Notes under the pieces: model-generated
The model's input: only the letters and a program-made list of their open reading frames with translations
Database searches by the model: none
Told to the model about the DNA's origin: nothing
Translations under genes and position numbers: made by a program
Source of the DNA: Blepharisma stoltei ATCC 30299
Taxonomy: Eukaryota; Protista; Ciliophora
DNA length: 64,000 nt
Direction of reading: 5' to 3'
Assembly: GCA_965603825.1 (NCBI GenBank)
Contig: CBFDEM010000002.1
Coordinates: 682,001 to 746,000 of the forward strand
In this document: one piece after another, positions 1-46,819 of the stretch
Layout of the letters: the number at the start of each line of letters is the position of its first letter
Numbering within the stretch: position 1 is the stretch's first letter

Positions 1-569
1 CATCCTCATGTTTACACTTTGAGTCGTTGAGGGATCTGCTCCACCAAAAATATAAATGCTCTGTGTGTAATTTAATACTCCTGCTTTACGAGGATAGCGT
101 AAAGATTGTAAAATTCGTTTTAATCTAAATGAATCTAAATCAATAATGCAAGCATGACAGCTTTCATTATGGAATTCATTCCAATCCAAAAGAGCTCATT
201 ATTAGAGATTTTAACTACAAATATCTCACTTCTTCCTATCTATCCACCAAAATCAACATTGATTTCTACTTGCTTAGAGTTTTCTATAATATATTGAATC
301 AGACAAGGCGATTCTTTTACGTGATTGACAGAATAAAGGAATTTAGAGTCATCGTAGGAGGATGGCGAAAAAGGCTTAGAAATCAAATCTGCAATCTTCG
401 TTCTAAGTTTTCCATAATACTCATTATATATACTTACATAATTTGAATAGGCAGTTTTTAATTCTTCATCTATTGTATTAAACTTATATATTTTTGATCG
501 GTTAGATAAGATGCTTTCATATTGCAGAAATCCCTTGTAAAAACTTTTCTCTATCAATTTGTGGGTCAC
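1..569 (-). pseudogene. Coiled-coil/Kelch-like family copy K1, frameshifted, runs off the left edge
   Basis: ORF 240..569 carries the family motifs FSP-S-YDDSKFLYS and LIQYIIENS. Downstream NNEL..., IIDLDSFRLKRIL and IYIFGG are recognisable across frame breaks. Confidence 0.75.
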
Positions 570-654
570 TTAAAACAATTCCATTTAAATGTGAATTCAT
601 AATATGAACTCTAAAAACCTTAATTATTCATATATCAATTTTTCTAAAATTATC

Positions 655-1846
655 TTATCTTTTGCCAGCTCTTGGAGGTGGTTGTTTTCCTCCTTTTTTT
701 AACTGTTCAGCCTTAGCTTTTTTCGCGCAAATCGGAATATGCATATTCCCAAAATATTCGCTAAACGATCTTCCACAATATGGACACTTAGTATGTTGGT
801 ACACAAAAAAATTATCCACAATAGCTAATATCATTTTATCATATGGTGATTTATAATCTCCAGACCCTGCAAGTCTAGTAGCTTTTAGCTGTTCACTCTG
901 CATTATCAATTTATTTCTAGGTGGTGAGGCTGACTTTCTAGCTTTGTTATAGGAAATGCTTTTTTCCTCTTCAAAGCTACTCCTATTGCTTCTCATGAGA
1001 CGCTCTACAATAGAAAGCGAAGGAATTTTTATCCCCAAAGTATTTACTTTTTCAATCACAAAATTTTGGCTTAAAATGTCATTTATAGAGGGTCTTTCGC
1101 TCATTTCTTTTTTCATGCACCAATCAACTATATACTTAAGCTCATTCGAGTAATAATCTCTAATAGGTGAGTGTCTTTCATTCTGAACTTTATAAGCATT
1201 TCCTTCAAATGGATGCTTAAGCTGGCAAAGGAAATATAAAACGTTCCCAAGAGCCCATATGTCGCTTTCTTTGGATGGGAGAACCCCTCTTCACATTTCT
1301 GGAGAATAGTAAAAAGGAGTCCCTCCCACAGATGATGTAGTTAGATACCTGGAAAGCCCGAAATCTCCAATCTTAACGTTGTTGTTTTTGTCTAGTAAAA
1401 TATTCTCTGGCTTTATGTCTCTATGGATATAGCCGTTTGAGTGCATGCATTCTAAGCCAAAGCAGATCTGAATAAAATATTTTCAGATTTCGCTTTCTGC
1501 AAAGGGTTGGCCAGTTTGAATCTGGTCAACTATTAGTTTAAGCAGATCAGTGGTTTTCACAGTAATCTATAATCATGTAAACTTTATTGTCTTGGTCAAT
1601 TCTCCTTTCTAAGTGGAGAAGGTATGGGTTATTCAGCTCAGAAAGAATTTTAATTTCTGTTTCCACATCTTTTCAGCTCTTAGCATCTCCATACTTCTTT
1701 ACAACAGTTTTCATTGCATAGATCTTATTGTCAGCTAAATAGCTATTACCAATCCTTCTAACTTTGTAGACAACTCCAAAGAATCCAAAGTTAATGTCAT
1801 CTACAACTTCAAATTCGTTTGTGATTTCTGCTGGAAAATGTAGCAT
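655..1846 (-). CDS. NEK/NIMA-like Ser/Thr kinase with a C-terminal C2HC zinc finger; one 15-nt intron and one apparent 1-nt insertion at ~1553
   Basis: Reading TGA as Trp from ATG 1846 gives [44 protein letters not shown] and SDIWALG, continuing into ORF 655..1116 with CPYCGRSF...HIPIC. The frame breaks at TGT GAA AAC C ACT GAT CTG. Confidence 0.85.
1735..1749 (-). other. 15-nt spliceosomal intron GTAATAGCTATTTAG
   Basis: Removing it restores the NEK-type [13 protein letters not shown]. It has GTAAT..TAG ends and A at position 10, as in heterotrich tiny introns. Confidence 0.8.
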
Positions 1847-3149
1847 AATTAATAAATCTTTATGCGAATTTTATTTTCACAAATCGAAAATATTAATTTA
1901 ATAATTATCAGCTTTCTAAAATTCTGAAACCCAAGCAGTTTATTTATGAAAAATGTGACAAAAATTTACTTTAATGCAAGCTGTTTTACTACTTTTTAAA
2001 CTTAGCCTTATCAAAAAGTAATAATTGAGGGATGAATTGGCTAGTATAATTAAAGAACTTGAAATATTTACCATGAAAGGCTTTATATTTAAGTCACAAA
2101 CTGCACTATTATCTTCAGAATAGCATTCATGCTCACCTGATTGAAACCTTGTAGGAACGCACATCCATTATAATGTCCTAATTGCGCATTTTGATTTTAT
2201 GCGTTTTAGCGGAATATTCGAAATTGGATTATTTAGCCCACTCTCATAAATCCAGCTGCGGCAGTGTATAATAAGTTCTGTATTTCCAGGAATGATAACC
2301 TTCGAAGCTTCAGAAGCAGCATTTGAAAGAATTGAAAACTATTTAAATATAAATATTATATGCAGGCATCCTTTTTGTCTGATTTTGTTTTTAAAAATAA
2401 AAGCCAAAAATGAAATTTCATGAACTATTTGCGCTATTTCCATCGGCCTATTTCTATTTACAAGTAATCAACTTTGGATAAGCTTGTAAATTATATACTG
2501 AATCCTTTAGTATAGAAGCTCGCTTCTGGTAGTGCACCAGCTAAAAGAAGTTCATGTCTTGCTGCACTCTTAATCAAAGGCTATTAATACGTGAAAATTT
2601 TGGGACTGCACTTGTTTTAAATTGGATGATTTCTATGTAATCCAAACTTGATAACTTATTAGGAAAATTATCTTATTATTTGGCAGGTTAGCAAAAAAGG
2701 CGTGCATTTTGTCTCATTTTAGATAATGTCCTCTTTTAGCTAAATATATTAATCGATCTAATTGCTGAGCGTTCTTTGCTTTTAAATGTAAATAATAATT
2801 TCTTTTTAATGGGGTTCTGGAAATTCTTTTTAATCGTAGCTAATTATAAATGAACACTTTGCTAGTATAAAGAGTATGGTTAATATTGATATTATACCTC
2901 TAGTCAAAGAAGCTAGAGAGTAAAAAATGAATGTTTGCTATCTGAACATTTCAATTAAGATTATTTACTTATACCACAAATATTGTAAAAGCTAAGCATA
3001 AAAATTCGTGATTTTTCTATTAAAATTCTTATTAAAGACAAAAGCTATGAAATGCTCAATCCCCATTGTATAGTTACAATTGCTCTCCCAATTTTTGTAA
3101 AACGCATTTAGACATCCAAAGTGCTTTAATGCCTAATAAATATTATCTA

Positions 3150-4171
3150 ATATCTAATCTAATTTCGCTTTCTCAAACATTATTCCAGCCTTCGAATAAA
3201 TAAATCCTTGAATTCCCAGCAATTAATAATTTATATAAATCTTTATCAGTCCTCATTTTAATTTCAGTAAAACTATCTAAATTGACATCATATTCAAAAA
3301 TATTTTCTTTACTTCAGTGTCATATTAACAAAACTCTTTGTTTAAAAAGTGCAACTGAACAATCCATTGATTGTTCTGGAATTGAAAGCAAAGTTTCTCA
3401 TCTATTTTTTGTTAAATCAAATCTTTGAACAATTGTTGATATAAAATAATTCCCAGTCGATGATGCTTCCTAATCCCCCAAATATATAAAGACATTGCTG
3501 GAAATACAAAATCCCTGCTTGGGAAATATTTTTTCCAGAGGGAAGAATTTTTTTAATTGTGTAAGAGTTTAAATTAATTATGAGAGTTATACCAGTGATT
3601 GGGTTCTCTTTTCCGTAGCAGAAAAGTTCGTTATTTGGAAGCTGGACTATGCAAGAAGCAGCAGCCAGTGCATTATAATCTTCAATGTTGAATTTAGAGT
3701 GCTGAAAATTTGTAATATTATAAAGTGATAGCTCAGCTTTATTTTTAAGCTCAAGATTTTTGTTGATTAAATAGAGAGTTTGGCTGTCTTCATAGACATA
3801 TGGAGAAAAATCATTGAGTATGAGGTTTTCGATTGCGGCATGAAGTCTTTTAGAGAAGCATTGATATTCATCTATATAAGCTGAATAAGATTTTTAATAG
3901 TCTCATTATTGTATAACAAAAATTCAAATTTTTTGTCATTTTGATAGTGACCAACTATATCATCAAACTCAGTTTTTAATTTTTCTTTGATTGTTTCTAA
4001 TTCTTCTATTTTAGTGCTTGGCTTTTGTGTTAAGTGGCTTAATGTATCATTATATAATGATATAGAGTTGAATTTCATATCAAAGGCCTCAATCTCAGTT
4101 AATGAGAGTTCAGCATAAGAAATATTAAATTTGGATTCAAATTCCTTACAAGAATTTTCGATATCTTGCAT
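3150..4171 (-). pseudogene. Kelch-like family copy K2, frameshifted
   Basis: ORF 3872..4171, then a shifted frame reading FSPYVYEDSQTLY...IVQLPNNELFCYG...LYIFGG. Further frameshifts follow; the 3' end is approximate. Confidence 0.8.
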
Positions 4172-5011
4172 TTTATTGTTTCTCTATTATTACTTTATAA
4201 TTTCAGCTTATAAAAATCAATATTATTATATTCAAAGAAAAATTATCGTAACAATGCAAAAATCTTATTAGAAGAGCATTTTAAAACTAATCTTAAAAGC
4301 TTGGACTCCTTGAATTCTTTTGAATTTAAATTAAATTCAAAGAATAAAAATTTACTTGAATTGTATCTATCTCCAAGAACCCCAAAATAAACTTTTCTCC
4401 TTCTTATAATTCTATTTAAAATTTAATAAATTAGCTAGATATCTCATATATCAGCTTCTAATTATTTATTATTTAAATAATATTAAAAGGACTTCTAAAC
4501 CTCATAAAATTGTAGATTAGTTAGTTCATATATTCTTTTCATTTTATTTTTTACTGTAGGATCTGATTACTAGGTAAAAGTCACTTTTTTTAAATATCAA
4601 CTCTCTAGCCTAATCTCTGTATAAGGAAAATCATATTTAGCACCTGATTCTTGTCAGTTCCTATAAGGCTACAATGTCACTTTCATTATTGAAGTTTCAC
4701 ATATTTACCATTAAAATTTAATTACTGCTATTTTTTGGTGCAAATGCAATTATAATCTCTTTGAGAGCTGATTAATTAAAGCTAGATCTAATTTCATATA
4801 TAGTTAAATCAATTATTATTAGTCATAAGAATAGGTGAAGCTTAATTCAACCATTGGGCCTTCAAATTTTTGGATTTCTTTTAATTCTTTTTTCTTCAAA
4901 TCGAATTCGTAATATAAAAGCATGCTTGGACCGGAATAAATATCATAAGCTCCTAAATATACTTTTTTCTTGCTTATAACTCTATATGACTGAGCAGTAA
5001 ATAAGCTTCCT

Positions 5012-5977
5012 TTAAATTCTCCAATTTTTGTCCAAACATATTCATTGTCATAATCGCTTTCTCACATGCATAATTCTCTGCTTAAAAGGAACTGCTGAGC
5101 TAGATGTAAAATCTTCACTTAAAAGAGGTAGCAAGGACCATTTATTTTTGATTAAATCAAATTTTCGATTGCAATTTTGTTCATCAGAAAAAGAGGGAAA
5201 TAGGTTCCAAGAAGCTGCGTTAATCGTAGGAACTGCCACCCCACCAAATATATAAACATTTTGCTGATAATAAAAGATTCCTGATCTGTGAAGATAGCTA
5301 GTAGATGGCAAAATTCGTTTTATTTTATATGAATTTAAATCAATTATGCAAACATAGCAAGCATCATCCTTATTTCCGATACAAAATAATTCGTTGTTGG
5401 GGAGTTGAACGACACTGACTTCATCATTGGTTAGTCTCTCAGATAAATCAATGTTTATTTTTTCTTGTTGAGATTTTTCTATGTCGTATACAACAAGTTC
5501 AGTTTTATCCATTTGACTGCTCATAGAATAAAGGTATTTTGGGTCTTGATAGATATATGGAGAAAAAGACTCAGAAATTAGACCTTCTATTACCTCTCTA
5601 AGTATGCTAGAAAATTGAGTATACACTTCAACATATTTCAAATAAGCATTCATAGCTTCATTATCTGTTTGCAATAAATCTATGAATATTTGATTATTTT
5701 GATAAGAAGAACTTATATTTTTGAATTCTTTTTCTACTTCTTCTTTAATTTTTTCTAATTTTTCTATTATTGGATTTTTATCCTCATAAAATTGAAGTTT
5801 GATTGAGCTTTGTGGTTTTTTATTGACTTCATTTAGAGAAAGTTCAGTCGATAAGATATAATCAGTATTACTTCTTAATCATTCTACTGTTTTTCTTTTC
5901 TGCTTCACATTCTTTGTTTTAAAATTTCAATCATGAGAATTGCTTCTCTTTGCCATAACTGCCTCAAGGTTTCCCAT
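5012..5977 (-). CDS. Kelch-like family copy K3 (~321 aa); last blade lies in the +1 frame (4819..5067)
   Basis: ATG 5977 is in frame with ORF 5048..5674 through two TGA=Trp codons. Motifs QLPNNELFCIG, VYIFGG and RKFDLIKNKW. Confidence 0.75.
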
Positions 5978-6149: not shown

Positions 6150-7238
6150 TGAATATCTGAAAGCTAAACTAACTCTGGGCCTTCAAAATTTTGAATATCC
6201 TTAAGTTTCTTTCTTTTCAAATTGAACTAGTAATACAAAAATTGGGTTGGATCGGAATAATTGTCATATACTCCAAAGTGACCCTATTCTTGCTTTATTT
6301 AAAAACTCAAGCGCTGATAGCAAAATTTTCTGTTTAAAAGACACTGCTGAGCAGCCTGTAAAACTTCTTATTGGTGCTGAAGGTAGCACAGTCCATTTAT
6401 TGTTGACTAAATCAAACTTCCGATTACAAATTTCATTAGGATTATGAGAACCGAGAATGAAAGGCTTTGAAGTTAAGCCAAACTGAGGTATTATGACTCC
6501 GCCAAACATGTAAACGTTTTGCTGATAGTAAAAGATTCCAGAATTTCGAAAATATGTAGTGGTGGTAAAATTCGTTTTACCTTATACGAAGTTAAATCTA
6601 AAATGCAGGCATGGCAAGCGGTTCCTTTATTACCTACAAAATAACTCATTATTGGGAAGTTGAACGACGCTGATTTCATCATTAGTAAGCTTCTCGTATA
6701 AATCAATGTTTATTTTAGTTTGTTGGGATTTTTCTATATCGTATGCAGCAAGTTCAGCTTGATCATTTTGAGTATATATTGAATATAAAATTTTAGAGCT
6801 TTGATAGACGTATGGGGAAAAAGACTCAAAAACTAGATTTTCTATAGTTTCTCTAAGTCTATTTGAAAAATTAGTGTAAACTTCAGTATATTTCAAATAA
6901 GCATTCATAGCTTCGCTATTTGCTTGCAATAACTTTATGAATTCTTGATTATTCTGATAGGAAGAGTTTATATTTTCAAATTCAGTTTCTACTTCTTCTT
7001 TAATTTTTTCTAATTCTTTTATTATTGGAGTTTTATCCTCATAAAATTTAAGCTTGATTGGGCGTTTGGTTTCTTTGCCCATTTCATTTAAAGCAGGCTC
7101 AATGGATAAGATATGTTCAGTTTTACTTATTAACGATTCTATTGGAGTTAAATCTTGCTCAATATGTTTTACTCTTGGATCTATTTGGCTAAGTTGGTCT
7201 TTGCTTCTATTCCTCTTAACTGTTCCGAAAAAATTCAT
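6150..7238 (-). pseudogene. Kelch-like family copy K4, several frameshifts
   Basis: ORFs 6630..7238, 6491..6706 and 6264..6509 are consecutive pieces of one family member. Confidence 0.8.
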
Positions 7239-8216
7239 AATTTATCATTGACACGAACTATAAAAGTAATATTAATATTGTTTATCCTGAATATTTATAT
7301 TGATTCTCATCACAAAGCCTTAGTGCTGCCAATCTAGCTAGGGAATTCATTTGTCACTTTTTGGATAGCAAGCTTTTTTAGTTGATTTCTATTGAATATT
7401 TGTTAAACTTGACTGCTAGTTTTAGCCCAGAAAAGGCACATAAAATTCCCAAGTTGGTAGTAAGGCATTTTACGAGCAATATGAGTATTCCACCTATATT
7501 TAATAATGTTTTAAGAAGTTTTCAGGCGATAAATAACGAGATATAAAGTTAAAAATTAAATTGAATTTTCAGCTTAATGAAGCTAAATATCACTGGGTTC
7601 GTAACTATAATATTATCGATACTAAGCATACACGAATTTTTAATTTTTATATTTTATAATAATGAGTAAACTAAAAGATGATAAGCTAATAATGCATAAA
7701 TACTTTTATAGCTCACCATTAAAAATGCAGACTGAATTTGCTAGCTTTATTTCAAGATAACAATCAGTTAAGCGCTATTAATCATAATCATATTCAAAAT
7801 TTTTTCTATTTCTTGGCATATTTTTTGGTTATTTTTTTAATGCTAAAAATTTTATGATATAATTTCAGTTATAAATAATAGGACAAAAATGTTGTTGTGT
7901 TATAAGCATAATGTGAAGTTACGAGATGCATCACTATATATGCATGAATTTTAAAGCCTTAATAATAAAAATATTATTATATTAACGGCTATACAAATAA
8001 ATACTAAAAGTCTAAAATATTAATTATTTTATATAGTTAAACAATTAGGCTAGCTTGCTAATCTCATAATATATATGTTTAATTTTAGACGCAATATTAA
8101 TTAAGTCCTATTAATCATACTCATACTCAAAATGTTAGAACAAAAAAAGGGAAAACCAGCAATAGCAGACATTCCGGACAAATTAAAAGTGCAAAAGTCT
8201 CTAGATAGTTGAATTC

Positions 8217-9442
8217 TTAAAAAAAACCCATAAGGGTTTGCTGAGAGCATTTGTGTGCTCTCTGAATAATTGATGATATAACCCTATACGGTTGAGCACT
8301 AAAAAAATCTCTGCTAAATTTACTGATCCGACTCCAAGCATACTCATTACCATATTCGCTTTCCCATAAGCTCCCTCAAGCCTCTAATAAATAAACCCTT
8401 GAGTTTCCAGCGAACAATAGCTTTTCTGTGGGCTTCAGGATTAATTCAATTTTATTGAAATTTTCTAAGTTTATCTCGTACTCATAAACACAATCCTGGC
8501 ATTCTTGTCCTACAACAAGAATTTTATTCTTGAATGGCACTACTGAACAAAAAGTTATTGAATCAGGTACTGAAAGTAACGAAACCCATTTATTTGGGGT
8601 TAAATCAAATCTTTTATTCGAATTTTCTTTTTTGTATGAAGAAGATAAATGAGCTCTCAAGGAGGAAGTAGTAAGAATTATTGGTGAGAGCCCACCTATG
8701 ATGTAAACACTACCCTGATAGTATAAAATTCCCGATTTTTGGGGATAACTTGTAGACGGTAAAGTTCGCTTGATTTGATATGAATACAAGTCAATAGTTC
8801 AGGCGTTGCAACTGTCTCTGTTGAAGTTCCCAAAACAAAATAGTTCATTGTTAGGAAGTTGAACTACGCTGACTTCGTCATTAGTTAGTGGCTTAGGCAG
8901 ATTAATATTGACTTTTGTTTGCTGAGACTTTTCTATGTTATATTGAATAAATTCAATCGGATATGCGTGGCTGTTGACAAAATAAAGAATTTTAGAATCT
9001 TCATATGAATGTGGAGAAAAAGATTCGGCTATCAGGTGTTTTATTGTTTTTCTAAGATTTATAGAAATTTGCTGTAGGTTTCTGTATACTTTAAATAAAC
9101 ATTGCTAATTTCTTCGTCTGCTTTTAGTAATTGTATGAAATTTATATCATTTTGATAAGAAGCATTTATATTTTGAAACTCAGCATCTAAGACTTCTTTG
9201 AGGTTTTCTAATTCTTCGATTTTAGAATCATTATCCTCATAAAATTTAAGTTTAATTGGTCAATTTGCCTTTTTATCCTCCTTTCTTAAAGTTAAATAGC
9301 ATGATGATATATGATCGATTTTTGCTTTAAGTGATTTTAGTACATTTGATTTGAGTTCAATATTTGTTTCTTTAGATCCTCTTGGATTTATTAAAATATC
9401 CTGAGAATTGATTCTCTTATCAATTTCACTGGGATTCCTCAT
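8217..9442 (-). pseudogene. Kelch-like family copy K5; 1-nt deletion at ~9068 and truncated tail; keeps the blade missing from K3/K10/K13/K14
   Basis: ORF 9260..9442 continues through TGA. TTTCT here versus TTCTCT in the paralog at 15660. ORF 8376..8789 continues as WGSLWESEYGNEYAW. Confidence 0.8.
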
Positions 9443-9479
9443 ATTTACTATGATAGAATAATTGCATTAGCAATGAAGT

Positions 9480-9970
9480 TTAATATGAAAATTAAATCAA
9501 ATTGAATGCAATAATTTATCTGAAAATAAACTCTTCTCCTATTCTCAACTCTATAAATTGTTCGTTTGGCAATGCATTTATAATGAATCTGTTTATTTAA
9601 CAAATATTTGCTATCGGGCACGCTTTCCCATATACTAATTCATGCTTCCAATAAATAAACTCGAATTTCTAGTATTCTGGTTTTGCAAAATTTCTAAAAC
9701 TATGTCGTATACATATATAAACTTTTACAATCATTTCCTATTTCCTGTAATAATGGCTTTGAAAAAGGCACTGGAGAGCATAAAGTCAATAAAATTGGAA
9801 CGGTTGCAGAAATGCTTATGCTAAAAATAATAATTTCTTTATGTTTCAAGAAATGTAGCTTGGCTCTAAAAGTTTATAATGTTTTGGAAATGTTTAAGAA
9901 TTGATAATATAAATAATTTCCTTTTAACTTTGAATTGAAAGAAAATGTTTTTAAATTTCTATTTTTTGGT
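9480..9970 (-). repeat. Degenerate Kelch C-terminal relic plus flank, near-identical to 16050..16655
   Basis: Long shared stretches, e.g. ctatcggg..cgctttcccatatactaa...ggcactggagagcataaagtcaataaaattggaacggttgcagaaatgc. Related to the C-terminus of K16. Confidence 0.8.
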
Positions 9971-10027: not shown

Positions 10028-10861
10028 TTAATCGTATTCATAATAATGACTTAATTGAACGACTGGACCTTCAAAGTTTTGGATTTCCTTTAATTCTTTT
10101 TTCTTCAAATTGAACTCGTAATATAAAAACATGCTTGGATAGGAATAGATGTCATAAACTCCCAATATACTATATCAAGTAGGTGGTAAAATTCGCTTGA
10201 TTTCATATGAATTTAAATCAATTATGAAAGCATAACCAAGATTCTTCTTTTTTCCGATACAAAATAGCTCATTGTTGGGGAGTTGAACAACGTTGACTTC
10301 ATCATTGGTTGAAAACTCAGATAAACAAATGTTTATTTTTTCTTGTTGAGACTTTTCTATATCATATACAACAAGTTCAGTTTTATTCATTTGACTGCTC
10401 ATAGAATAAAGAAATTTTGGGTCTTGATAAATATATGGAGAAGATGATTCAGAAATTAGAGCTTCTATTGAATCTTTAAGTTTACTAGAAAAATTAGCAT
10501 ACACTTCAACATATTTCAAATAAGCACTTATAGCTTCCTCATTTGCTTGCAGTAAATCTATTAATATTGGATCATTTTGATAAGAAGAACTTGTATTTTT
10601 AAATTCTTTGTCTACTTCTTCTTTAAGTTTTTCTAATTTTTCAATAATTGGATTTTTGTCCTCGTAAAATTGAATTTTGAGAGAGTTTTTGGCTTTTTGG
10701 TTTACTTCATTTAGTGCAAGCTCAATCGATAAGATATGATCAGTTTTTTTTCTTAATGCTTTTATTTGGTTTTTTGTTTGCTTGATATTCTTTCCTTTAA
10801 TATCTGAATTAGCAGCTTGATTATCGCTTCTCTTTATATCAACTGTCCCAATATTTTCCAT
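10028..10861 (-). CDS. Kelch-like family copy K7 (~277 aa) with a large in-frame internal deletion
   Basis: MENIG start at 10861. ILPPT-W(TGA)-YSILGVYDIYSYPSMFLYYEFNLKKKE joins the first blade directly to the last one. TAA at 10028. Confidence 0.65.
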
Positions 10862-10981
10862 TATTAACAGAATATAATAAAATCTGAAATTAATTAATTT
10901 CATATTTTTGTACTTTAGAAATTAAGAAATATCAATTTTGATTACGTTTAAATAAACTATAAAATACTCTAGTATAAATTT

Positions 10982-11644
10982 TTATAGTTGCTTATTTAAA
11001 TCAATTATGAAAGCATAGCCAAGATCATTTGCTTTTCCGATACAAAATAGCTCTTTGTTGGGGAGTTGCACAACATTGACTTCATCATTGGTTAGTACCT
11101 CAGGTAAATAAATGCTTGCATTTGCTTGTTGAGACTTTTCTATGTCGTATACAACAAGTTCAATTTTATACATTTGACTGCTCATAGAATAAAGGTATTT
11201 TGGGTCTTGATAGATATATGGAGAAAAAGACTCAGAAATTAGAGCTTCTATTGAATCTTTAAGTCTACTAGAAAAACTAGCATACACTTCAACATATTCC
11301 AAATAGGCATTCATAGCTTCCTCATTTGCTTGCAGTAAATCTATTAATATTGAATCATTTTGATAGAAAGAACTTGTATTTTTAAATTCTTTTTCTAATT
11401 CTTCTTTAAGTTTTTCTAATTCTTCAATAATTGGATTTTTGTCCTCGTAAAATTGAATTTTGAGAGAGTTTTTGGCTTTTTGGTTTACTTCATTTAGTGC
11501 AAGCTCAATCGATAAGATATGATCAGTTTTTTTTCTTAATGCTTTTATTTGGTTTTTTGTTTGCTTGATATTCTTTCCTTTAATATCTGAATTAGCAGCT
11601 TGATTATCGCTTCTCTTTATATCGACTGTCTCAATATTTTCCAT
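10982..11644 (-). pseudogene. Kelch-like family copy K8, C-terminally truncated tandem duplicate of K7
   Basis: Near-identical to K7 and breaks after IIDLN into the upstream flank of K7. Confidence 0.75.
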
Positions 11645-12249
11645 TATTAACAGAATATAATAAAATCTGAAATTAATTAATTTCATATTTTTATGTTTGA
11701 GGAATTAAAACATTTCAATTTTGATTACGTTTAAATAAACTATAAAAAGCCCCAGTATAATTTTAATTAGCTTAAACTTTTTGTATAGAGCTGTTTTTGG
11801 TTTCATCTAGCGATGCTAACTCATTTGAAACTTTTCTTTATTGCTGCTGCATGACTCTGAGTTGATTTAAGCTATTTTAATAATTGAGTGTGAAGTATTG
11901 TGCAGTATGGTTTCTTTTATAATTGTAAAGTGTGAGATGAATTTATGATGTGAAATTGTAGTTTAATGTATTCCTTAAGGATTGTTATGTATTATCTTGC
12001 CATACTAATGTGATAATAATCTATAGGTATTCTAATAAAATTTATATGATGGGAAAGTGTAAAAATTTTGTACCATGAAATTATTTAGTGCTATTTTTAA
12101 GGTTTATTTTGGATATACATAAAATGACTATTTTTCATTCTGACGTGGTATTTTGGTTCAAAGAACTCCTAAAGATTAACTTTGCCTCAAGGTGAGTGGC
12201 CCATGACTATTCCGCTAAATATTTCCTTTGACTTAAGTTTTGTAAGAAT

Positions 12250-13040
12250 TATTAGTCATAAGAATAATCGAAACTTATTTGAGCACTTAAGCTTTCGAAA
12301 CTTTGAATTTCATTTAATTTTTATCTCCACACTGAACTCAAAATATAAAACTTACTTGCAGAATTGATGTCAGAAACTCTGAAAGATACATTTTTCTTAC
12401 TTATACTTATATATAACAATCTAAATTTAGATACTATTTTAATAATCATAATAATAAGGCAAAATTCAAATCTTGCAAACTATAAATAGGGATATAAATT
12501 TATATGAGCAGTAAATAAGCTTCCGCTAAACTTAAAATTTGTTTTAAAATATATATTCGCTTTCTCCTTAGAAAATAAAGAGTTATTAATCTTATTCTCA
12601 AAATGACTTAATTCAATGCTCGGGCCTTTAAATTTTTGGATCCTTTTAATTCTTTTTTCTTCAAATTGAACTCGTAATATAAAAACATGCTTGGATAAGA
12701 ATAAATGTCATAAACTCCTAAATATACTTTATTTTTGCTTATAATTCTATACGGCGAGCAGAAATATTTTTTAAATCTCTTTTTTTCCAAACGATATTCT
12801 TGCTAATCCTTCTACATAATATATTTTAGAAGAATTATCTTCGTAGAATTGAATTTTAAAGGAATTGCTGGGCTTTTGTGTTAAGTTGCTTAATGTATCA
12901 TTATATAATGATATACAGTTGAATTTCATATTAAAGGCTAAATCTCAGTTAATGGCAATTCAGCATAAGAAATATTAAACTTGGATTCAAATGCCTTACA
13001 AACATTTTCGATGTCTTGCATTTTATTGGCTTTTTCCATT
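12250..13040 (-). pseudogene. Mosaic of Kelch-family relics: two C-terminal pieces and a K2-like N-terminus
   Basis: 12608..12790 reads VYLGVYDIYSYPSMFLYYEFNLKKKE. 12860..13040 matches 4010..4190. 12250..12470 matches 25110..25325. Confidence 0.7.
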
Positions 13041-13430: not shown

Positions 13431-13855
13431 AGACGTGCATTTCAAAGGATTGACGCTATAATCTGCCCATTCAAACTATTTTGGTTAATTAATTCTATTT
13501 CATAAGTACAATAATATTGAAATTTAGCATATTTACATAAAAATAGATTACTGTTATTATATAGAAAAAAGACAAAAATTATCTCTTTTGAGAGCTGATT
13601 GATTAAAACCAGAATGCTTTTACAAATATAATTAAATTTTAATCTAAGAAAATAAAGAGTTATTAATCGTATATATAAAAATGATTTAATTTGACGCTTG
13701 GGCCTTCAAATTTCTGGATTTCCCTTAATTCCTTTTTCTTCAAATTGAACTCGTAATATAAAAACTTGCTTGGATTTGAATAGATGTCATAAACTCCCAA
13801 ATATACTTTATTTTTGCTTATAATCCTATATGGCTGAGTAGTAAATAAGCTTCCT

Positions 13856-29150: not shown

Positions 29151-29470
29151 ATATTTATTTCTCATAATTACTCCACTATTTAAATAGTGAAGTTTATTAT
29201 AAGTTTTTTTGCAAAAAACTAATGTGTGGTATTTTTGTTTGTATTTAATTAAATTTTCTATTCCTTCATCAAATTTGATGCTATCAGGTCACAAATCAGA
29301 GATTTCATGCTTAGGCCTCCCGCTTAGAGACTCCTGATATTGCTGAGCCAACTCAAACTCAAAAAACCATGCTGGATATGAATGTGTAAAGGTAAGAAAT
29401 TTTTTGTAGAGTATCGAAAAATTTTATAGATTTCCATCATTTTTTAATAGCTTAAAGGCATGCAATCATT

Positions 29471-33175: not shown

Positions 33176-34564
33176 ATGGGAAGTTGCTTTTCAAAATCAA
33201 AGAAATCTAAGTCAAAAGATATAATAAAGACAAAAATACCTACTAAGTTTGAAGAGTTTTATTACTTAGATAGACATTCAGCAATAATTCTTCACCATAA
33301 AGCTGACGGTATGATCGAAATTTTAGAATTCAAAAATCGAGTCAAATTCAATATTAACTCAGCAGTTGGCTATATGACTAAAACACGCTTGATAGTTGCT
33401 GGTGGCTCAAATGGTGGCAAATATAGTAAAAATGTTTATGATGTGGATTTTGCTACAGCAGATTTCGTAGCCCTAAAAGAATTACCAATCCCATCTAGAA
33501 GTGGCACTTTAATCAAATATGAGAATCGAATCTATTTTGTCGGTGGGATTAGTAAATCAAATAGGAGAGAAAAGCCTGCTCCATTGATGTATTTAAACTT
33601 AGCAGATTCGACATGGAAGTTTCTAATTTGCGAACAATTAAATCAGGATTATAGGAACTATGCTGACTTAAATCCTGAATTCCCTATTCAGAATTTGTGA
33701 TTTCCTGGAGCATTTTTATGAAATGATAGAATTTACATTGTTGGAGGCTATAAGATAAACAATCAACGGCGACCGGAGTCAAATTCGGATGTTTACAGTT
33801 TGAATTTAAAAAATAATTCTTTGAGAAAAGAAAAATTCATTTTTCCTATTGAAGGGGCTCATCCATTATGCAGCGTTAATGGCAATGAAGTTACCATCAT
33901 TAGCCGATATGACCCATTAGATGGAAAAAAAAGTTCTAAGTGATGCATAGTTAAAATGATAGAAGACTCACCTATGATAAAAACATCATTAAATCCAATA
34001 AACATTGAGCTTACTGAGTTTTATCCTGCAATCAAATCTCTAAATGCTACTATATTTATTTCAAATCCTCATTTTATATTAAAGAGAAACAATTCTTATA
34101 GATGGCAAACATTCGAACTTCAAAGAGTTATTTTAGTGAAAAATTTAAGAAGTATGGAAAATCAAGCCTCTAACCATGGAACAATAGGCAGAGCAGAAAA
34201 ATTTTCTGAATTAGATGAGTCTCAGAATTCCCAATGGATGTCTCCTGAGTGGCATCATATTAATAGCAAATATTTTCCATCTCTAACTTTGATTGAAATT
34301 GACTGCAAGGAAGTTGTTAAAGCAAAAATACGCCAAAAAAAAGGCGAAAAATCAATGAAAAGATTAAATGATTTAATGAAAGCTATAAAGTCAGGTCGAA
34401 GAGGACGAAATAGGGAGGACAGTGAGAGTGAGAATGGCAGTCAAAATTCAGTTGAGGAGGAAAGCGACAGTGAGGGAAAGAGTGAAGATAGCAGACAAAG
34501 CTCATATAATGAAAGTGGAAGCGAGGAAGAGATCGATCTTTCGGAGATTTCCATAAACTACTAA
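33176..34564 (+). CDS. Kelch-repeat protein with N-terminal MGSC acylation motif and acidic tail (462 aa)
   Basis: Two ORFs joined in frame by three TGA codons. LIVAGG, IYFVGG and IYIVGG blades. Homologous to 56705..58609. Confidence 0.8.
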
Positions 34565-35063: not shown

Positions 35064-37343
35064 ATGGAGCTTTGGTCTAAAAGAGAATTTTATAATTCAC
35101 AAGCCAATTCAAAACATCAAATATTTATTAACAATTGAGTCGAGAAAAGTGATGGATCAGAAACAGAATGCCCAGCTGATACTTTCTACTTTCCGACCCC
35201 AATGAACTTCCCAGAGCTCGGTAATCTCGATCTCAGCCAAGAGGAAAGTTATAACAAATCTTGCGTAAGATCCCCTCAAAAGGAGTACACCAATAAACAT
35301 AGTAAAAATGAAAGAAAATATAGCTCGAGTTCTTCTGATAGAAGTAGCCATCATGACCAAAAGAAATATAGAAATAACCCAAAAAGCTCATATGAAGGTC
35401 CTCAAATGTTTGAGTATCTTAAACCAGTAAAAGGGCAAACGAGAAAGAATCCTCATGAAGATTTCGGTGAGGAAAAAAAATATGTTAAAGAAGTCCATAA
35501 AAAGCATCATAAAAAGCATAGAGAAAGAAAACATTCCCAAGCCTTAATCAGTTCAAGTGATTATGAAAATAGTAGTCAAGAAGATGTACGAATGAATCAT
35601 GCTAAGAGGAACTCTAGGCATAAAAAGAGGCATGAGTCTGATTCTTCAAATTCTTCAAGGTCGGGCTCAAATGACTATAAAAAGAAAAAACATCATCACA
35701 AACAAAAAGCCAAAGGTTTAGAGTATAAGGTGGATATGCTTTTAGAATTAATGGCAAGCGGCTTTCTTGATAAAAAGCATAAAAAACCTAAAAAGCCACC
35801 ACAAGCAGAGCTCTTTCCTGGGATTATTAGTTTTCCAGCTCAAAATGAGAAAAAAAGATATGAAGATTATGAAGAAGTAAAGATAAACAATCATCAAGAA
35901 GAATTGCCTGAGGATAATAGGAAACTTAATATTGGCCAATTTCAAACTGTCGTTTGCTTAATTGTTGGAGAAACAGGGTCTGGAAAGTCTACATTCATTA
36001 ATTCTATTACCAATTTTTTCAGAGATGGAACTCTTAAAAATAAAAAAATTGCCATACCCAATCAGTTTTATCCTCAAACTGAGCATGATTTTAATCAATC
36101 AGAAAATGGTCAAAATCAAAAAGCCAGCCTAACGAATGATTGCAATAGATATGATTTTGAAGACGCTATGAGTGCTAGCCAATTTACATTTATAGATACT
36201 CCTGGACTAAGTGACACTAGAGGTGTAGAGCAAGATGACAAAAACATAAAAAAAATTATCCAAGAAATTAAAAACTACGAAGAAATCAATGCAATTATAG
36301 TAGTTCAAAATGGAGGTGCAGCCAGAATAACTGCAAGCTTAAAAAACTCAATTGTTAGAATCATAAATGCTATTCCAAAAATGGCTGAGGATAATATAGT
36401 TTTAGTTCTTACAAATTCTCCCTATACTCATAACTTCGATGCTGGCGCTCTTCAATTAAAACCGCAGAATACATTTTTGATAGATAATGCGTGCTATAAC
36501 ATTCGTTTTGAAGATATTAGAAAGTCTGAACTAGCTGGTTTTCAAATAAATTGGGACCTTTCTATGAAAAAAATAAAAGAAATAGCAGAATTTGTATGCA
36601 AAATGGGTAAATTTAATGCTAAATGTTTTCTAATGATGAACGAAAAAGTAGATAAAGCAAAGCAAGTCTTGCACGAAGCGAAAACAAGACTCTTTAATCT
36701 TTTTGAACTAAAGGCTGAACTTGATGAAATTATAATGCAGAAAGAGTCAAAATTAAAAAATGCCAAGGATTGCGAAAATTATACTCAGACTAAAGAAATA
36801 TCTCAAACAGACTGGCAAGATGTTAGTTACCACAATACTGTTTGTGGCAATGATGATTCTTTATGCCATGATCATTGCGGATTGGAATTTCAACCAACTA
36901 AGAATACACAGCATTTTACTCAGTGCGCTTGCATGGGAAGCGATCTTAAATGTACAAAATGCAAATGCGGGCCTGATAGCCACTATCATACTAAGAGAAT
37001 TCCTGTAAAAACGACCAAAAAAGTTACAGAAGTATTGCAAGATTTAAAGAATAAATACGATGGCCTTAATTCTGAGGCAAACAAGTTATCAAATAAAGAG
37101 GAAGAGCTTGAAAATAATATAAAAAATGTTGAAAAATCAATAAGGCAGGCTAAAGATAGAATAAAGGAAGCAATTAAAAAGATAAAGGAAGTTGCTCCTC
37201 GCTATAATATATCAGAGGAAATTGATTGCTATATCAAAATTGAAGAAGCCCATTTGAAAGAAGAGACAGACCCTAAGAAGAGAGCTAAAATCTATTCTAG
37301 CATTCGGGCACTTCAGGATATTTACCAAAGTCTTATTCTTTAA
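35064..37343 (+). CDS. GTPase copy G4 with His/Lys/Ser-rich disordered N-terminus and no KH domains (759 aa, intact)
   Basis: ATG 35064 in a ttatttaaATG context is in frame with 35202 through one TGA. GETGSGKS, DTPG, VLTN and a complete Cys/His module. Confidence 0.88.
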
Positions 37344-41240: not shown

Positions 41241-41269
41241 ATTAGAAAGAATGTCTAGCTTTTTTAAAG

Positions 41270-41600
41270 ATTATCTGTTTGGATAATATGCGGTTGTAGT
41301 GTATAATAATCGTTATCATATCTAAAGAATTCCAAGAGAGCCCAAAAACAGTTGGAAGTATTATCTATAAGCAAAAGAAGGTATAATCGTCATAAAGCGA
41401 AATCTAATAACTTATAGATCGATTAGGATTAAATTATGAATAAAAAACAAAAAATTTAGAAAATTTCTAGAGTATAAATAAATAATCAGGATAACAGAAT
41501 TTGATGAAGGTGATCAAAATTACATAATTTCTGAAGAATTAAGCTGAAAATAGGAAGGGTTACTTAAAATAAAATTCCAGCATACGGATTGCAATAAAGT
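41270..41600 (+). pseudogene. Decayed GTPase C-terminal relic, duplicated at 43690..44100
   Basis: tatcatatctaaagaattccaagagagcccaaaaacagttgg is a degenerate YHTKRIPRKVQKTVE and is near-identical to 43790..44100. Confidence 0.75.
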
Positions 41601-41731: not shown

Positions 41732-43309
41732 ATGGAGTATCCTTATATACCAAATAGCAATCCTTTTACGTCTTATATATATAAGAGCAATGATTTAAGA
41801 TTGGGTGCTAACAGAGTGCAACCATTAGAGGAACCCAAAACTTTTGGGAAAAATGCTAATTCTCCAAAGCAAAATTTTCCAAACGTTAAGCCTAATCCTC
41901 ACGCTCACCCTTATAATCCAAGACTTTTGAATATGAACCCATATTCTCCTCAATATAAAAATAAAGATCCAGAACCTAGATTTAGTGATTTAAATAATAT
42001 AGACGGTGACCAAAAAACTGAAAAAAACGAAGGCAACTTATTAAGGTATCCATCGCTTACTTCTTTATCTGAAGGAGAGCAGGAATATCCTGGTGAAAGT
42101 TCCAATTATAAAACCCCTCCTCATGAAGACTCAGGAAGAACGCATAGAAAGTTTCATGAAGATTTAAATGAAATTCATAGAGAAAAATACCCAAGAGATA
42201 GATCAGAAAAACGAGTTCCTCATAGACATCGTGAACATGAATATGTTACCAAAAGAACTTTTATTCATATGATGGATGAGCTGAGGAAAGAAATAAAATT
42301 ATCTAGATTGAATTCTCGAGAAGTGGTAAGCCGAGCAAGAAAGGAACTTGATAGCAGGCAAAGCGATGAGGAACCAGAAGATTCGCAGCATTTTACAAAG
42401 GTACGAAAAAATGAGCAGGAAGAAACAAAAATCAAACCAAAAAACCCAAAAAAAGTCCCAAGACAAAAAAAGCTCAATATTCCTCCACACCAAAAAATAG
42501 TTTCTTTAATTATTGGGCAAACAGGGTCAGGAAAGTCCACATTTATCAATATTATCACAAATTTTTTCAGAAATGGAACCCTGGAGAATAAAAAAATTGC
42601 GATACCAACCAAAGATTTTCCCCAAACTGAACTTGATTTTGGTCATGCAGAAAACGGAAAAGGAGTAGACCAAAGCCAGACAGTTAAATGCTGTCGGTAT
42701 GATTTTAAAGATCTTGACAGTGGTAGTACTTTTACATTTATAGATACGCCAGGACTAAGTGACACTCGAGGTGTAGATCAAGATGACAAGAATATAAAAA
42801 TAATTGAAAATGAAATTTTAAAGTTCACAGACATCAATGCAATTATAATAGTTCAAAACGGAAGTGAGGCTAGAAAAACAGCAAGCGTGAATAATTCTTT
42901 GGTTAGAATTAGAAATGCTTTGCCAAGAAAAGTTGAAAATAGCATAGTTTTAGTCCTCACAAATTCTCATATTTCTACTAATTTCAATGTTAATTCGTTA
43001 CCTGTAACTCCAAAATACACGTTTTTAATGGAAAATAACGCTTTTAATATAGCTAACCCTAATGAGTGAGTTTTAATGGAAATGCAGCCATACTGGGATA
43101 AGTCGATGAGAAAAGTTAAAGAAATAGCCGAATGTTTATGCAAAATGGGCAGTTTTAGTGTCAGATGCTTTAAAGAGATGATTGAAGAAAAAGATAGAGC
43201 CAAACAAAGCTTCCACCAGGCAAAAATTAAACTTCAAAACCTCTATAGCCTGCAGGAACAGCTTGAAGAGATTAAAATAATGAAAGAATCATCATTGAAT
43301 AATGCTTAG
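41732..43309 (+). pseudogene. GTPase copy G5 with Pro/Asn-rich N-terminus, truncated before the Cys module (525 codons)
   Basis: TGA at 43067 is read through in frame. TAG at 43307 falls where G6 continues, and similarity to G6 ends there. Confidence 0.75.
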
Positions 43310-44579
43310 GAAAATAAAAATCATGTCATTTAAAGAGACATTTAAATGTTTATGCATATTATATCGAGTAAATTTCATCTCAGAAATCATAGATTATAAT
43401 TTCTCTATTGCTACTGAAAGAATTCAGAGAAATTAAATTAATTGGAATATCGATGATTAATTCCAAGTCCAAAAATTTTTGTAAAGAAAACCTCGAGAAA
43501 GATTTTATTATTAATATCGTTTAATATAATGTTACTCTTAAGGATACGTTTCCATTTTTATCAAAAATCAATTAATTCTTATCGATTATAATGGAAAATG
43601 CTCAAAAGCTATTTAGATATTATTAAAACCTACCATCTTAGTTTTATAAATATCCTGCTAGCAGAATCAGCAAAAATTAATTTCCAATAATGATTATTAT
43701 GTCATGAGCAATCTGAAATAGATACAATCAAATGATTCTCAATTTTTTCTAGTTATGTATGCATGGGAAGATCATCTGCTTGGATAATATGCGGATGCAA
43801 TTATAATAATCGTTATCATATCTAAAGAATTCCAAGAGAGCCCAAAAACAGTTGGAAGTATTATCTATAAGCAAAAGAAGGTATGACCTCATAAAGCAAA
43901 ATCTAATAACTTATAGATCGAAGAATCTAAATTATGAATAAAAAACTAAAAATTTAGAAAATTTCTAGAGTATAAATAAATAATCAGGATTGCAGAACAG
44001 AATTTGATGAGGGTGATCAAAATTACAACATTTCTGAAGAATTAAGCTGAAATAAGAAGGATTACTTAAAATAAAATGCCAGCATACGGATTGCAATAAA
44101 GTTATATATAAAACCTTAATATAAAAATTAAATGAATCAGACTGAACAGTTTATTTTTTATTAAATCTGCAAGAAAATTTATAAAGGATCTCTATTTTCA
44201 ATAAGCTATAATCTGAATTTTGTATTTTAAATTTTATCCATTTTAACTAAATATTTAATTGTTCTACACTTTTATAAGCCTCAAAATAAGTCGAAAAGCT
44301 CTAAAACTTCTGTTTTTCAATATAATAAGCACAGTCAAAAAACCATTGACTATTTTTTAAAATAACTAAAAATTTCCAACTGCTTAAAGCTTTAATTTCT
44401 TTCTAAAATTATTATGCATTTAAATTAATCTAGAGATTGACATAAAAGCCTTTCATTTATTTTCAAATAGATTTTAATAAATTTTTATAAGCATTTAAGG
44501 AATTTTTTGCTATTAAAATCGTTTTCTTACAATCCTAAAATATTTACCATCTATTTGACATTCTATCTACAATTTTAAA

Positions 44580-46819
44580 ATGAACTATCCGTATCTGCCA
44601 AATATCAATCCTTATACGTCCTCCGTATATAAGGCCGATATAAGATTGGGTTCTAGCAGAAAGCAACCATTTGAGGAACCCAAAAATAGCAATATTCCAG
44701 CCAATAACCCTCACACTGCTCATTACCCTGCTCCTCACCCTGATCCTCACCCTGCTCCTCACCCTGATCCTCACCCTGCTCCTCACCTTGCTTCTCACCC
44801 TGCTCCTCACATTGCTCCTCACATTGCTCCTCACACTGCTCCTCACACTGCTCCTTACGCTGCTCCTTACATTTATAACCTAAGACATATGAATATGAAC
44901 CCAAATTCTGTCCAACATCTGAATCATCCTAATGAATTTAATTATAAAAGTCCAGGACATATAGCTAATGATACAAATAATATGAATGGGGGACAAAACA
45001 CTAACAATATCAACTTACTAAGATGACCATCGCTTCCTCCTTTAGCTCCTGTGCATGTAGAGCCGAAACCTCCTTATGAGGGTATCGATAATAAAACCCC
45101 TTATCAAATTCCTCATATAAATAATGTAAATGAAAATAATACCTTACAAGAAGTAAGAGCTTTGCATCAGAGAATTGATGAGATGAATAGAGGAATAGAA
45201 TTACTCATTCAGAATGCTCAAAATTCATATTATGCCTTTGATGAAGTAAGAATTTTGCATGAGATGATTAGTGAGGTGAATAGACGAATAGAATCATTCA
45301 CATTGAATGCAAAAAATGTGTGCAATCCGCAGCAGCTTTTTACAAACGTAAGACCAAACAATGAAGAAACAAAAATCAAACCAAAAAAACCAAGACCAAA
45401 AAAGCTCGACATTCCTCCATACCAAAAAATAGTTTCTTTAGTTATTGGGCAAACAGGGTCAGGAAAGTCCACATTTATCAATATTATCACAAATTTTTTT
45501 AGAAATGGGACCCTGGAGAATAAAAAAATTGCGATTCCGACCAAAGATTTTCCCCAAACTGAGCGTGATTTTGTACATGCAGAAAGCGGAAAGGGAGTAG
45601 ACCAAAGCCAAACAGTTAAATGCTGTCGGTATGATTTTAAAGATCTTGACAGTTGTAGTACTTTTACATTTATAGATACGCCAGGACTAAGTGACACTCG
45701 AGGTGTAGATCAAGATGACAAGAATATAAAAATAATTGAAAATGAAATTTTAAAGTTCACAGACATCAATGCAATTATAATAGTTCAAAACGGAAGTGAG
45801 GCTAGAAAAACAGCAAGCGTGAATAATTCTTTGGTTAGAATTAGAAATGCTTTGCCAAGAAAAGTTGAAGATAACATAATTTTAGTCCTCACAAATTCTC
45901 ATATTTCTTCTAATTTCAATGTCGATGCTTTACCTGTAACTCCAAAACACACGCTTATTATGGATAATAACGCTTTTAATATAGTTGAACCTACCCAGTA
46001 TGATTTAATGGATTTGAAGCCATCCTGGGATAAGTCGATGAGAAAAGTTAAAGAAATAGCCGAATATTTATGCACAATGGGCAGTTTTAGCACCAAATGC
46101 TATAAAGAGATGATTGAAGAAAAAGATAGAGCCCTACTCAAGTTTCATCAGGCAAAAAGTAAACTCCAAAACCTTTATGGCCTACAGGAGCAGCTTGAAG
46201 AGATTAAAATAAAGAAAGAGTCATATTTGAAAGATGCTAAAGCTTATCAAAATTATAAACAAACCAAAATAATTGAGCAGATTGATTGAAAAGATGTAGA
46301 TTACCATAATACTGTTTGTAGCAATGATGAGTCTTTGTGCCATAAACAATGTGGTCTGGAATTCACCCCAGATAATGATGGAAACGTTTTTACGAATTGC
46401 GCATGCATGGGAGAGTCTGGGAAATGTAAGGCATGCAATTGTGGACCTGAAAGCCACTACCACACGAAAAAAATTCCTATAAAAATTCAAAAAAATGTTG
46501 AAGAAATCCTGCAGAATGTAAAAAAAAGTTTGATAAATTTAACGCACAAGCAAATAAATATGAAACTGAAGAGCAGAATTTTTTAAATGAAATACAAGAA
46601 GTGGAGAAATCGATAGATGATACTAAAAATGAAATAAAAAATGCAGTTCAAAGATTAAAACAAGTTGCCCCACATTATAATATATCCGATCAAATTCATA
46701 GCATCATTGAGCAATCAAAAATGCAACTGAAAATAGAGCGGAGGCCACATAAAAGAGGTGAAATTTTATCTACTATTAAGGTTCTTGAAGAAATTTATAA
46801 GAGTCTTAACTTTGATTAA
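44580..46819 (+). CDS. GTPase copy G6 with Pro-His repeat N-terminus; single frameshift in an A8 run at 46520..46527
   Basis: ORFs joined by TGA at 45024 and 46287. Adding one A restores VKKKFDKFNAQANKYETEE into ORF 46601. Confidence 0.8.
44709..44873 (+). repeat. Coding 12-nt minisatellite (CCTCAC-NNN-GCT) x ~13.5 encoding PHxA/PHPD
   Basis: Repeat units read directly in the sequence; absent from paralog G5. Confidence 0.95.

Follow-up and report, generated by a model that had tools for sequence, protein, structure and literature searches.

The somatic genome of the ciliate Blepharisma stoltei ATCC 30299 contains, on contig CBFDEM010000002.1 (here C2), a region where genes for Kelch-type propeller proteins adjoin genes for GTPases resembling the GIMAP and Toc families, and where most members of both families are broken. 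The stretch analysed, C2:682001-746000 (64,000 nt, hereafter the window), raises the question of whether such a region is a working locus, as a first-pass annotation of its letters had proposed in reading it as an innate-immune island, or a pair of arrays in decay, and of how its genes came to be broken. The answer reached here is that the window probably holds two adjacent, mostly decaying tandem arrays, in one of which two Kelch genes, K21 and K23, are intact in the germline and broken in the soma by the removal of a 143-nt segment.

The window is B. stoltei macronuclear (MAC, somatic) DNA. This follows from TGA codons that stand in frame where paralogues have Trp, so that TGA is read as Trp, from the match to the genome and from the published features of the ATCC 30299 somatic genome (41 Mb, UGA read as Trp, introns of 15-16 nt; PMC9942806). 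Its G+C content is about 30%. The somatic assembly that was searched comprises 41.46 Mb in 64 contigs, and proteins with TGA codons were searched in pieces or via their database protein identifiers.

Germline and somatic forms of the Kelch genes

The Kelch copies were mapped by tblastn with an intact 417-aa local reference (L006:4513-5775) from just upstream of the window, where an intact copy encodes a closed six-bladed propeller in one frame. Fifteen Kelch-like copies or relics were located, all on the minus strand between positions 22 and 26594, in agreement with the approximate number first claimed. None of these 15 somatic copies encodes a whole six-bladed propeller in one frame. Four of them, K05 (4852..5977, minus; ORF product P0026, 321 aa), K13 (13702..14841, minus; P0029), K21 (21283..22417, minus; a truncated somatic ORF) and K23 (23200..24316, minus; P0024, 320 aa in the soma), have a junction in common at which they are 149 nt shorter than the intact reference. 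The deletion takes the coding sequence from strand B of blade 4 through blade 5 and shifts the frame.

Two conventional ways of rescuing the K23-type frame were examined. For an intron, the break accommodates no conserved GT..AG segment of 15-16 nt; the only candidate, of 19 nt, is missing from K13, and no intron is placed there in the public gene models. For programmed frameshifting, neither a slippery site nor a stop-codon context was found at the junction.

The missing sequence was found in a second B. stoltei assembly, GCA_914767885.1, which was reached through the public product of K23. Its contig is 1,116,855 nt long against 848,676 nt for the somatic contig, and from its structure and the published description, with no match of accession, we infer that it is the MAC-scaffolded 'MAC + IES' germline assembly, IES standing for internal eliminated sequence (PMC9942856). 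Germline positions 906203-960366 were tiled and compared base by base with window positions 1-41548. The germline record has 33 extra segments here, 8325 nt in all, mostly bounded by TA-containing repeats. The GTPase genes GTP27 and GTP35 and the Kelch gene at 33176 are free of IESs in this record. The density of IESs is ordinary at about 0.8 per kb over the two compared stretches (1-41548 and 46028-62066), where the arrays account for 33 and the housekeeping block for about 19.

Exactly at the junctions of K13, K21 and K23, at 13917, 21498 (site 21497..21498, minus) and 23415 (site 23414..23415, minus), respectively, lie TAT-bounded segments of 143 nt that encode the missing blades 4-5 in frame. 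Each is accompanied by an AT-rich non-coding IES, of 94 nt at 13823 in K13, 90 nt at 21404 in K21 and 105 nt at 23321 in K23. Joined ORFs for K21 and K23 were translated by script with the 143-nt segment kept and the neighbouring non-coding IES (90-105 nt) removed. Both are uninterrupted, with six predicted blades, and encode 438 aa (K21) and 432 aa (K23); apart from loss of the segment neither gene has any lesion. K13 still carries a 1-nt deletion, in its N-terminal part, when its segment is kept. At the K05 junction no germline segment is recorded, so that it has either been lost from the germline or gone undetected. The germline comparison therefore explains the K23-type frame break.

A search of the MAC assembly with the 143-nt segment gives no match at all, whereas the 147 nt beside it, used as a control, retrieve all four copies. 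Mis-mapped reads from a paralogue are therefore an unlikely source of the segment.

The segment has also evolved as coding sequence would. In the coding frame the synonymous rate (dS) among its copies is 0.16-0.21 and the nonsynonymous rate (dN) 0.027, with at most one synonymous change in the other frames; the three copies are 94-99% identical, against 84-90% for the adjacent non-coding IES. Over the segment and the part downstream of it, K21 and K23 have a dN/dS ratio (ω) of 0.16, 10 of the 19 changes being synonymous where 3.4 are expected (binomial P = 6e-4). Comparison of K05, K13, K21 and K23 gives ω of 0.40-0.56 upstream of the junction, and downstream of it 0.20-0.40 in the old frame as against 0.6-1.3 in the other two. 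These values argue that the segment is functional coding sequence. Because purifying selection appears to have acted both on the segment and on the downstream part that is out of frame in the soma, they also imply that K21 and K23 are expressed in full-length form or were so until very recently.

There is precedent for such a state. In Paramecium, where deletions of gene parts can be inherited maternally, a functional part of the mating-type switch gene mtA is excised as an IES (PMC6182129), and in B. stoltei itself both partial excision of retrotransposase coding parts and cryptic excision of MAC-destined sequence have been described (PMC9942856). The condition of K21 and K23 resembles the logic of the mtA promoter excision: part of a gene is present in the germline and gone from the soma, and its ends are direct repeats that contain TA. 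The piece removed from the Kelch genes is, however, an internal coding segment and not a promoter; the excision affects several paralogues of a multigene family, and it was read from a comparison of assemblies. If K21 and K23 are what they seem, somatic 'pseudogenes' of ciliates can be intact germline genes disabled by developmental DNA elimination, which would change how decayed gene arrays in ciliate somatic genomes are interpreted.

The Kelch family

No window copy reaches a Kelch cut-off in Pfam, the best scoring 18.7 bits against 21.3 for Kelch_2, but relatives elsewhere in the genome match Kelch_1 with 35.4, 32.9 and 28.1 bits (cut-off 20.1). For the C-terminal 256 residues of the family archetype, P0031, AlphaFold2 (AF2) predicts a six-bladed propeller following helices, with a predicted local distance difference test score (pLDDT) of 91.9. 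This model matches KEAP1, KLHL12 and KLHL3 with E of about 1e-14 and TM-scores of 0.71-0.76 normalised to the target, and in an exhaustive protein search the archetype matches the K05 product P0026 at E 1.6e-11. The Kelch propeller claimed for these genes thus holds for the wider family, by profile and by structure.

The genome has at least 141 loci of this family, and few contigs lack one. Outside C2 there are 123, of which 25 fall in the 20 kb next to the left end of a contig, a zone that makes up about 3% of the genome; the loci are thus strongly enriched near contig ends. The exhaustive search of 1.84 billion representative proteins gave only 322 matches to the family, nine of ten sampled being from B. 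stoltei. Judged by this search, the family is lineage-restricted. A word-based search with Kelch queries retrieved no proteins other than products of the window and the query.

Change within the propeller is concentrated in one place. After the FGG motif of blade 3 there is a variable loop of 18-22 codons that carries insertions and deletions. Between K23 and either K21 or K13 its dN is 0.27-0.29 at a dS of 0.08-0.13, values that come from only 18 codons, while the preceding 98 scaffold codons have a dN of 0.02-0.03 at similar dS. The localised hypervariability that had been noticed in these genes is thereby borne out. By homology with the model the loop would be a B-C loop of the propeller, and such loops form the ligand face in KEAP1-type propellers.

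The likeness to the KEAP1 and KLHL propellers extends to the six-bladed fold of P0031 and to one blade with a canonical Kelch motif, the other blades being degenerate in sequence. The Blepharisma proteins lack the BTB and BACK domains and have instead an N-terminus that is a coiled coil or Cys-rich, and the window copies are below threshold with none whole in the soma. Compared with the hypervariable-loop Kelch family of B. stoltei at large, of which they are members, the window copies form a local subfamily with a plain coiled-coil N-terminus; this subfamily adjoins GTPases, and several of its copies lose coding pieces from the soma.

The GTPase family

Six GTPase genes, GTP17, GTP27, GTP30, GTP35, GTP41 and GTP44, lie on the plus strand within 16.7-46.8 kb together with three relics, as the first-pass annotation had counted them. 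In Pfam searches the GTPases score above the cut-off for MMR_HSR1, and the RNA-binding domain KH_1 (PF00013, cut-off 21.5 bits) is found in GTP27 (69.6 bits in two stretches) and GTP17 (37.2 bits). The AIG1 profile (PF04548, cut-off 27 bits) gives borderline scores in the window, with 24.5 bits for GTP35 and 20.4 for GTP27 by hmmscan and 27.1 for GTP35 in a six-frame search, and scores above the cut-off in relatives (P0015 40.7, P0020 36.1 and P0018 28.7 bits); a genome scan with AIG1 was unspecific, as bacterial control genomes also matched.

An AF2 model of GTP27 residues 290-781 (pLDDT 83) shows a G domain followed by a long helical hairpin, antiparallel and tipped by a beta-rich Cys/His module, and by further helices. 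The top Foldseek matches of the G domain are GIMAP7, Toc34, GIMAP5 and GIMAP2 (E 6e-7 to 2e-5). VIA-align places atToc33 (2j3e, Z 16.0 over 199 residues) and GIMAP7 (3zjc, Z 14.9) above generic GTPases, and Toc34 and GIMAP5/2/1/4 are further structural matches. Searches of the PDB by sequence only, with a single sequence or a profile, gave matches at the level of the P-loop. The claim of a GIMAP-clade G domain is therefore upheld by the structure searches, which put it closest to Toc33/34 and GIMAP7/5/2.

An alignment of paralogues and relatives shows that G1 (GxTGSGKST) and G3 (DTPG/DSPG) are invariant and that an NKxD-type G4 is missing, a conserved LTN motif standing in its place in the relatives as well. 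The GTPases thus share with the AIG1/GIMAP and Toc33/34 proteins (paraseptin, TRAFAC) the best structural match and the G1 (GxxGxGKST) and G3 (DTPG) motifs. They differ from these in having an N-terminal KH region and, C-terminally, the helical hairpin, the Cys/His module and a coiled coil, and in lacking NKxD, a membrane anchor and any transit-related feature.

Relatives in nematodes and bdelloid rotifers are 25-30% identical over about 70% of the length and have in common the G domain, a conserved Trp, the Cys/His module (YHxTxC...CHxxC...CxxCxC...HYH) and the terminal coiled coil; the module is conserved in fungal as well as in nematode and rotifer relatives. Placement in the Atlas leads to clusters named 'AIG1-type G domain' and 'DUF8206', with members from fungi, arthropods, nematodes, rotifers and chordates. 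Precomputed matches to PF26633 (DUF8206) exist for the relatives P0011-P0018, with whose Cys/His module that of the GTPases aligns. In the literature searched there was no mention of DUF8206 or of these Blepharisma families.

KH domains occur only in the Blepharisma members of the family. In the proteins of nematodes, bdelloid rotifers, arthropods and fungi that combine the G domain with DUF8206, the N-terminus is HET, ADP-ribosyltransferase (ART), MACPF or nothing, never KH; it is the more distant relatives that are fused to HET, ART or MACPF. Such fusions suit a conflict-type family and, because other members carry these cell-death or toxin domains, the family is a reasonable candidate for a role in conflict or surveillance. 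The combination of KH, a GIMAP-like G domain and DUF8206 would be an RNA-binding architecture new to a widespread, uncharacterised family of eukaryotic GTPases.

A second cluster of this family lies on the minus strand further along C2 (L008:8827-9962 and L009:2212-9155; C2:764.8-775.2 kb). It consists of about three fragmented GTPase paralogues, two of which are interrupted at DTPG (G3), one by an insert of about 2.2 kb and the other by one of about 0.25 kb.

Arrangement of the arrays and alternative readings

The Kelch array begins about 5.5 kb to the left of the window and extends over roughly C2:676.5-708.6 kb; the GTPase array occupies C2:699-729 kb. Comparison of the window with itself by blastn gives 97 paralogous blocks of 65-94% identity, as expected of the tandem duplication that had been claimed. 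The claim of mosaicism is borne out by GTP27 and GTP30, which are 71% identical in the N-terminal part (dS 0.42-0.59) and 87% identical in the C-terminal part (dS 0.24). One Kelch-GTPase pair was copied as a unit: in the self-comparison 16046-19170 is paralogous to 25364-29283, which contains K25 and GTP27 in head-to-head orientation, 210 bp apart. GTP17 therefore sits inside the Kelch array. Only to this extent are the two families interleaved, which is less than had been stated; they form two adjoining arrays on opposite strands.

The following picture is proposed. Both arrays would have been built by local segmental duplication with fast turnover, which left most members dead. The first is a local subfamily, with a coiled coil and six Kelch blades, of the large lineage-restricted family with variable loops; the second holds the only genes of this genome that combine KH with a GIMAP/Toc-like G domain, a helical stalk of DUF8206 type and the Cys/His module. 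A TA-bounded coding segment of 143 nt, for blades 4-5, would be removed in the manner of an IES, which cuts K21 and K23 short in the soma. The Kelch proteins may form oligomers by way of the coiled coil and use the loop face to bind ligands, and the GTPases may act as nucleotide-dependent switches or oligomerisers with an RNA-binding head. That the arrays are adjacent would be due to duplication, including that of the head-to-head pair, and would not in itself demonstrate functional coupling.

Several points weigh against this picture. The selection signal of ω = 0.16 comes from few substitutions, about 19 between K21 and K23, and pairwise ω may be distorted if paralogues exchange sequence by gene conversion. 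In the germline record, which is scaffolded on the MAC genome and whose identity as MAC + IES is itself deduced, the IESs are predicted ones; the comparison with it covers window positions 1-41548 and 46028-62066, and the germline and somatic states of K21 and K23 were read from assemblies. The single adjacency of Kelch and GTPase arrays, moreover, neither proves nor excludes that the two are coupled in function.

Three other accounts bear on the excision. The whole Kelch array may be dead, the excision then being an accident at a cryptic IES and the low ω a residue of recent inactivation or of gene conversion. The germline lesions found in 13 of the 15 copies suit this, as does the cryptic excision documented in B. 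stoltei (PMC9942856), and the identity of 94-99% around the junction, even in the divergent K05, suggests conversion. An ω of 0.16 between K21 and K23 is, however, hard to explain if the excision is as old as their split (dS 0.11-0.17), and the absence of any other lesion in these two genes also speaks against a dead array, which we consider unlikely. The excision could instead be a regulated, maternally inherited on/off switch of K21/K23-type genes, similar to that of mtA, by which recognition proteins would vary between clones. The segment is indeed bounded by TAT and missing from the MAC assembly; it consists wholly of in-frame coding sequence, with its three paralogous copies more alike than the non-coding IESs; it and the downstream frame appear to be under purifying selection; and functional gene parts are known to be excised as IESs (PMC6182129; PMC9942856). 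The retained form is, however, in evidence in no cell line, a recent epimutation of the laboratory strain that spread in trans among similar paralogues is compatible with these data, K05 has the same junction with no segment recorded in the germline, and other copies lose coding pieces untidily. A switch is rather improbable; were the excision facultative, it would be the first gene switch by IES machinery outside Paramecium, and would act on a multigene recognition family. A more far-reaching version, in which the excision is guided by small RNAs and inherited maternally, clones express different subsets of variable loops and the KH-GIMAP-like GTPases are RNA-sensing partners, has a small chance of being correct. 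If true, this ciliate would have a recognition system that owes its diversity to DNA editing in the soma.

The remaining alternative is the one with which the question began, an innate-immune island whose variable Kelch receptors would work with GIMAP-like GTPase effectors against viruses or endosymbionts. Several findings are compatible with it: a G domain of GIMAP/Toc type, relatives to which death or toxin domains (HET, ART and MACPF) are attached, a KH head that might recognise RNA of foreign origin, a hypervariable propeller loop with a dN about ten times that of the scaffold, arrays that evolve by birth and death, and the duplication as a unit of the head-to-head pair K25 and GTP27. The distribution of the two families tells against it. 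In this genome the GTPases are confined to C2, where they lie in the window and again 19-29 kb past its end, and the second cluster has no Kelch-family neighbour within C2:746-786 kb. The Kelch family is dispersed over the genome, in its many other loci, without GTPases, and the contigs of two GTPase relatives from other organisms have no Kelch neighbours. Kelch clusters number about a hundred, and some 5-10% of the genome is no more than 10 kb away from one; a single adjacency is therefore weak evidence. As far as could be tested, then, the families are unlinked elsewhere and do not co-cluster genome-wide. Furthermore, no Kelch copy of the 15 is whole in the soma, four of the six GTPases are damaged, ω over whole genes is 0.3-0.6 with an excess of change confined to a single loop, and PADLOC returned nothing significant. 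An immune island of coupled receptors and effectors is thus very improbable. The assignment of the genes to Kelch and GIMAP-like families stands, but a coupling of the two families is not supported; a conflict or surveillance role of either family, by association, is plausible.

Individual copies of the two families

The pseudogenisation that had been described is plain from the stops, frameshifts and truncations of individual copies. In the Kelch array, all on the minus strand, the leftmost copy is a relic of reference residues 101-251 in two frames with one stop (22..470), followed by a pseudogene for residues 1-349 with seven stops (3161..4171), both mapped by tblastn. To the right of K05, K06 (6309..7241) is a pseudogene with three stops, and at 6296 the germline has a 647-nt eliminated segment. 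This comprises a MITE-like element (MITE, miniature inverted-repeat transposable element), the coding sequence for blades 4-6 and the next IES, all eliminated as one. The element is palindromic, has TAAGGACCCCCCCC termini and was inserted in blade 4.

Coding pieces are also lost from the next copies. K08 (8223..9466) has a frameshift near 9060, and coding sequence for its blade 6 lies in a 221-nt IES at 8138. A C-terminal relic with two stops (9517..9804, tblastn) separates it from K10 (10031..10909; P0027, 277 aa), where blades 1-2 are joined in frame to blade 6 and the coding sequence for blade 3 is within a 138-nt IES at 10172. K11 (10970..11692; P0028, 220 aa) is truncated after blade 2.

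An N-terminal relic at 12804..13021 is 80-89% identical to the intact upstream copy. It is adjoined by another relic, at 13053-13502 on the plus strand, of the C-terminal part of a large receptor-like gene found upstream of the window (L006:757-3495). Fragments of unrelated neighbouring genes are thus part of the array, which is a patchwork. Beyond K13 there is a relic of residues 88-261 (15229..15771, tblastn) with an additional fragment at 16253-16345, and K19 (19741..20508; P0025, 244 aa) is truncated after the FGG motif of blade 3. The last copy, K25 (25426..26594), has a 340-aa ORF and a germline frameshift near 25626.

Only GTP27 and GTP35 of the six GTPase genes are full-length. GTP27 (26805..29150, plus; P0002, 781 aa) is intact and has two or three KH domains, the GIMAP/Toc-like G domain, the helical hairpin with the Cys/His module and the coiled coil; GTP35 (35064..37343, plus; 759 aa), also intact, has no KH and a basic low-complexity N-terminus. 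Pairwise ω among the GTPases is 0.30-0.57.

GTP17 (16747..19161, plus) is an ORF with two KH domains that ends in an in-frame stop at 17233-17235, followed by a 639-aa ORF (17242-19158; P0001) with KH, G domain and a degenerate Cys/His module. The latter is 99% identical to a public B. stoltei protein. In the region of 17566, P0001 is shorter than the window ORF by four residues in an acidic low-complexity run, a difference in length between assemblies or gene models. GTP30 (30065..32505, plus; P0003, 560 aa) has its C-terminal part in another frame, and a germline frameshift with a small deletion near 31588 removes the G4-like LTN motif. GTP44 (44580..46810, plus; P0004, 668 aa), which has no KH, has its tail in another frame by virtue of a germline frameshift in the last coiled coil near 46520-46580. 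All three of GTP17, GTP30 and GTP44 carry their lesions in the germline record too. GTP41 (41732..44102, plus; P0005, 525 aa, 41732-43306), again with no KH, is truncated after the first stalk helix and a decayed C-terminal remnant of it follows at 43683-44102 (plus). Two further relics on the same strand derive from a GTPase N-terminal (KH) region with many stops (29400..29905) and from a GTPase C-terminus (41267..41600).

Other genes in and around the arrays

The GTPase array ends at about 46807-46819 and is followed by MYCBPAP-like, PRP38, eIF2B and Sec5 genes, so that the right-hand boundary at a housekeeping block is where the first-pass annotation had drawn it. Within the Kelch array there is a protein kinase gene (658..1860, minus; Pfam Pkinase, translation), and within the GTPase array a small C2H2 zinc-finger gene (38748-39194, minus).

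Further Kelch-type genes lie beyond the housekeeping block, at 56705-58606 and 59939-62230. The former is a paralogue of the Kelch gene of a different type that stands among the GTPases (33176..34564, plus), which is intact, free of IESs and has an MGxCxS N-terminus. In this pair (33176-34561 and 56705-58606), which does not belong to the array family, the MGxCxS N-terminus resembles a myristoylation/palmitoylation site and the tails are acidic and Ser-rich. The gene at 59939-62230 (plus) encodes a large protein with Kelch repeats, EGF repeats of teneurin type and numerous N-glycosylation-like sites, which looks like a surface protein.

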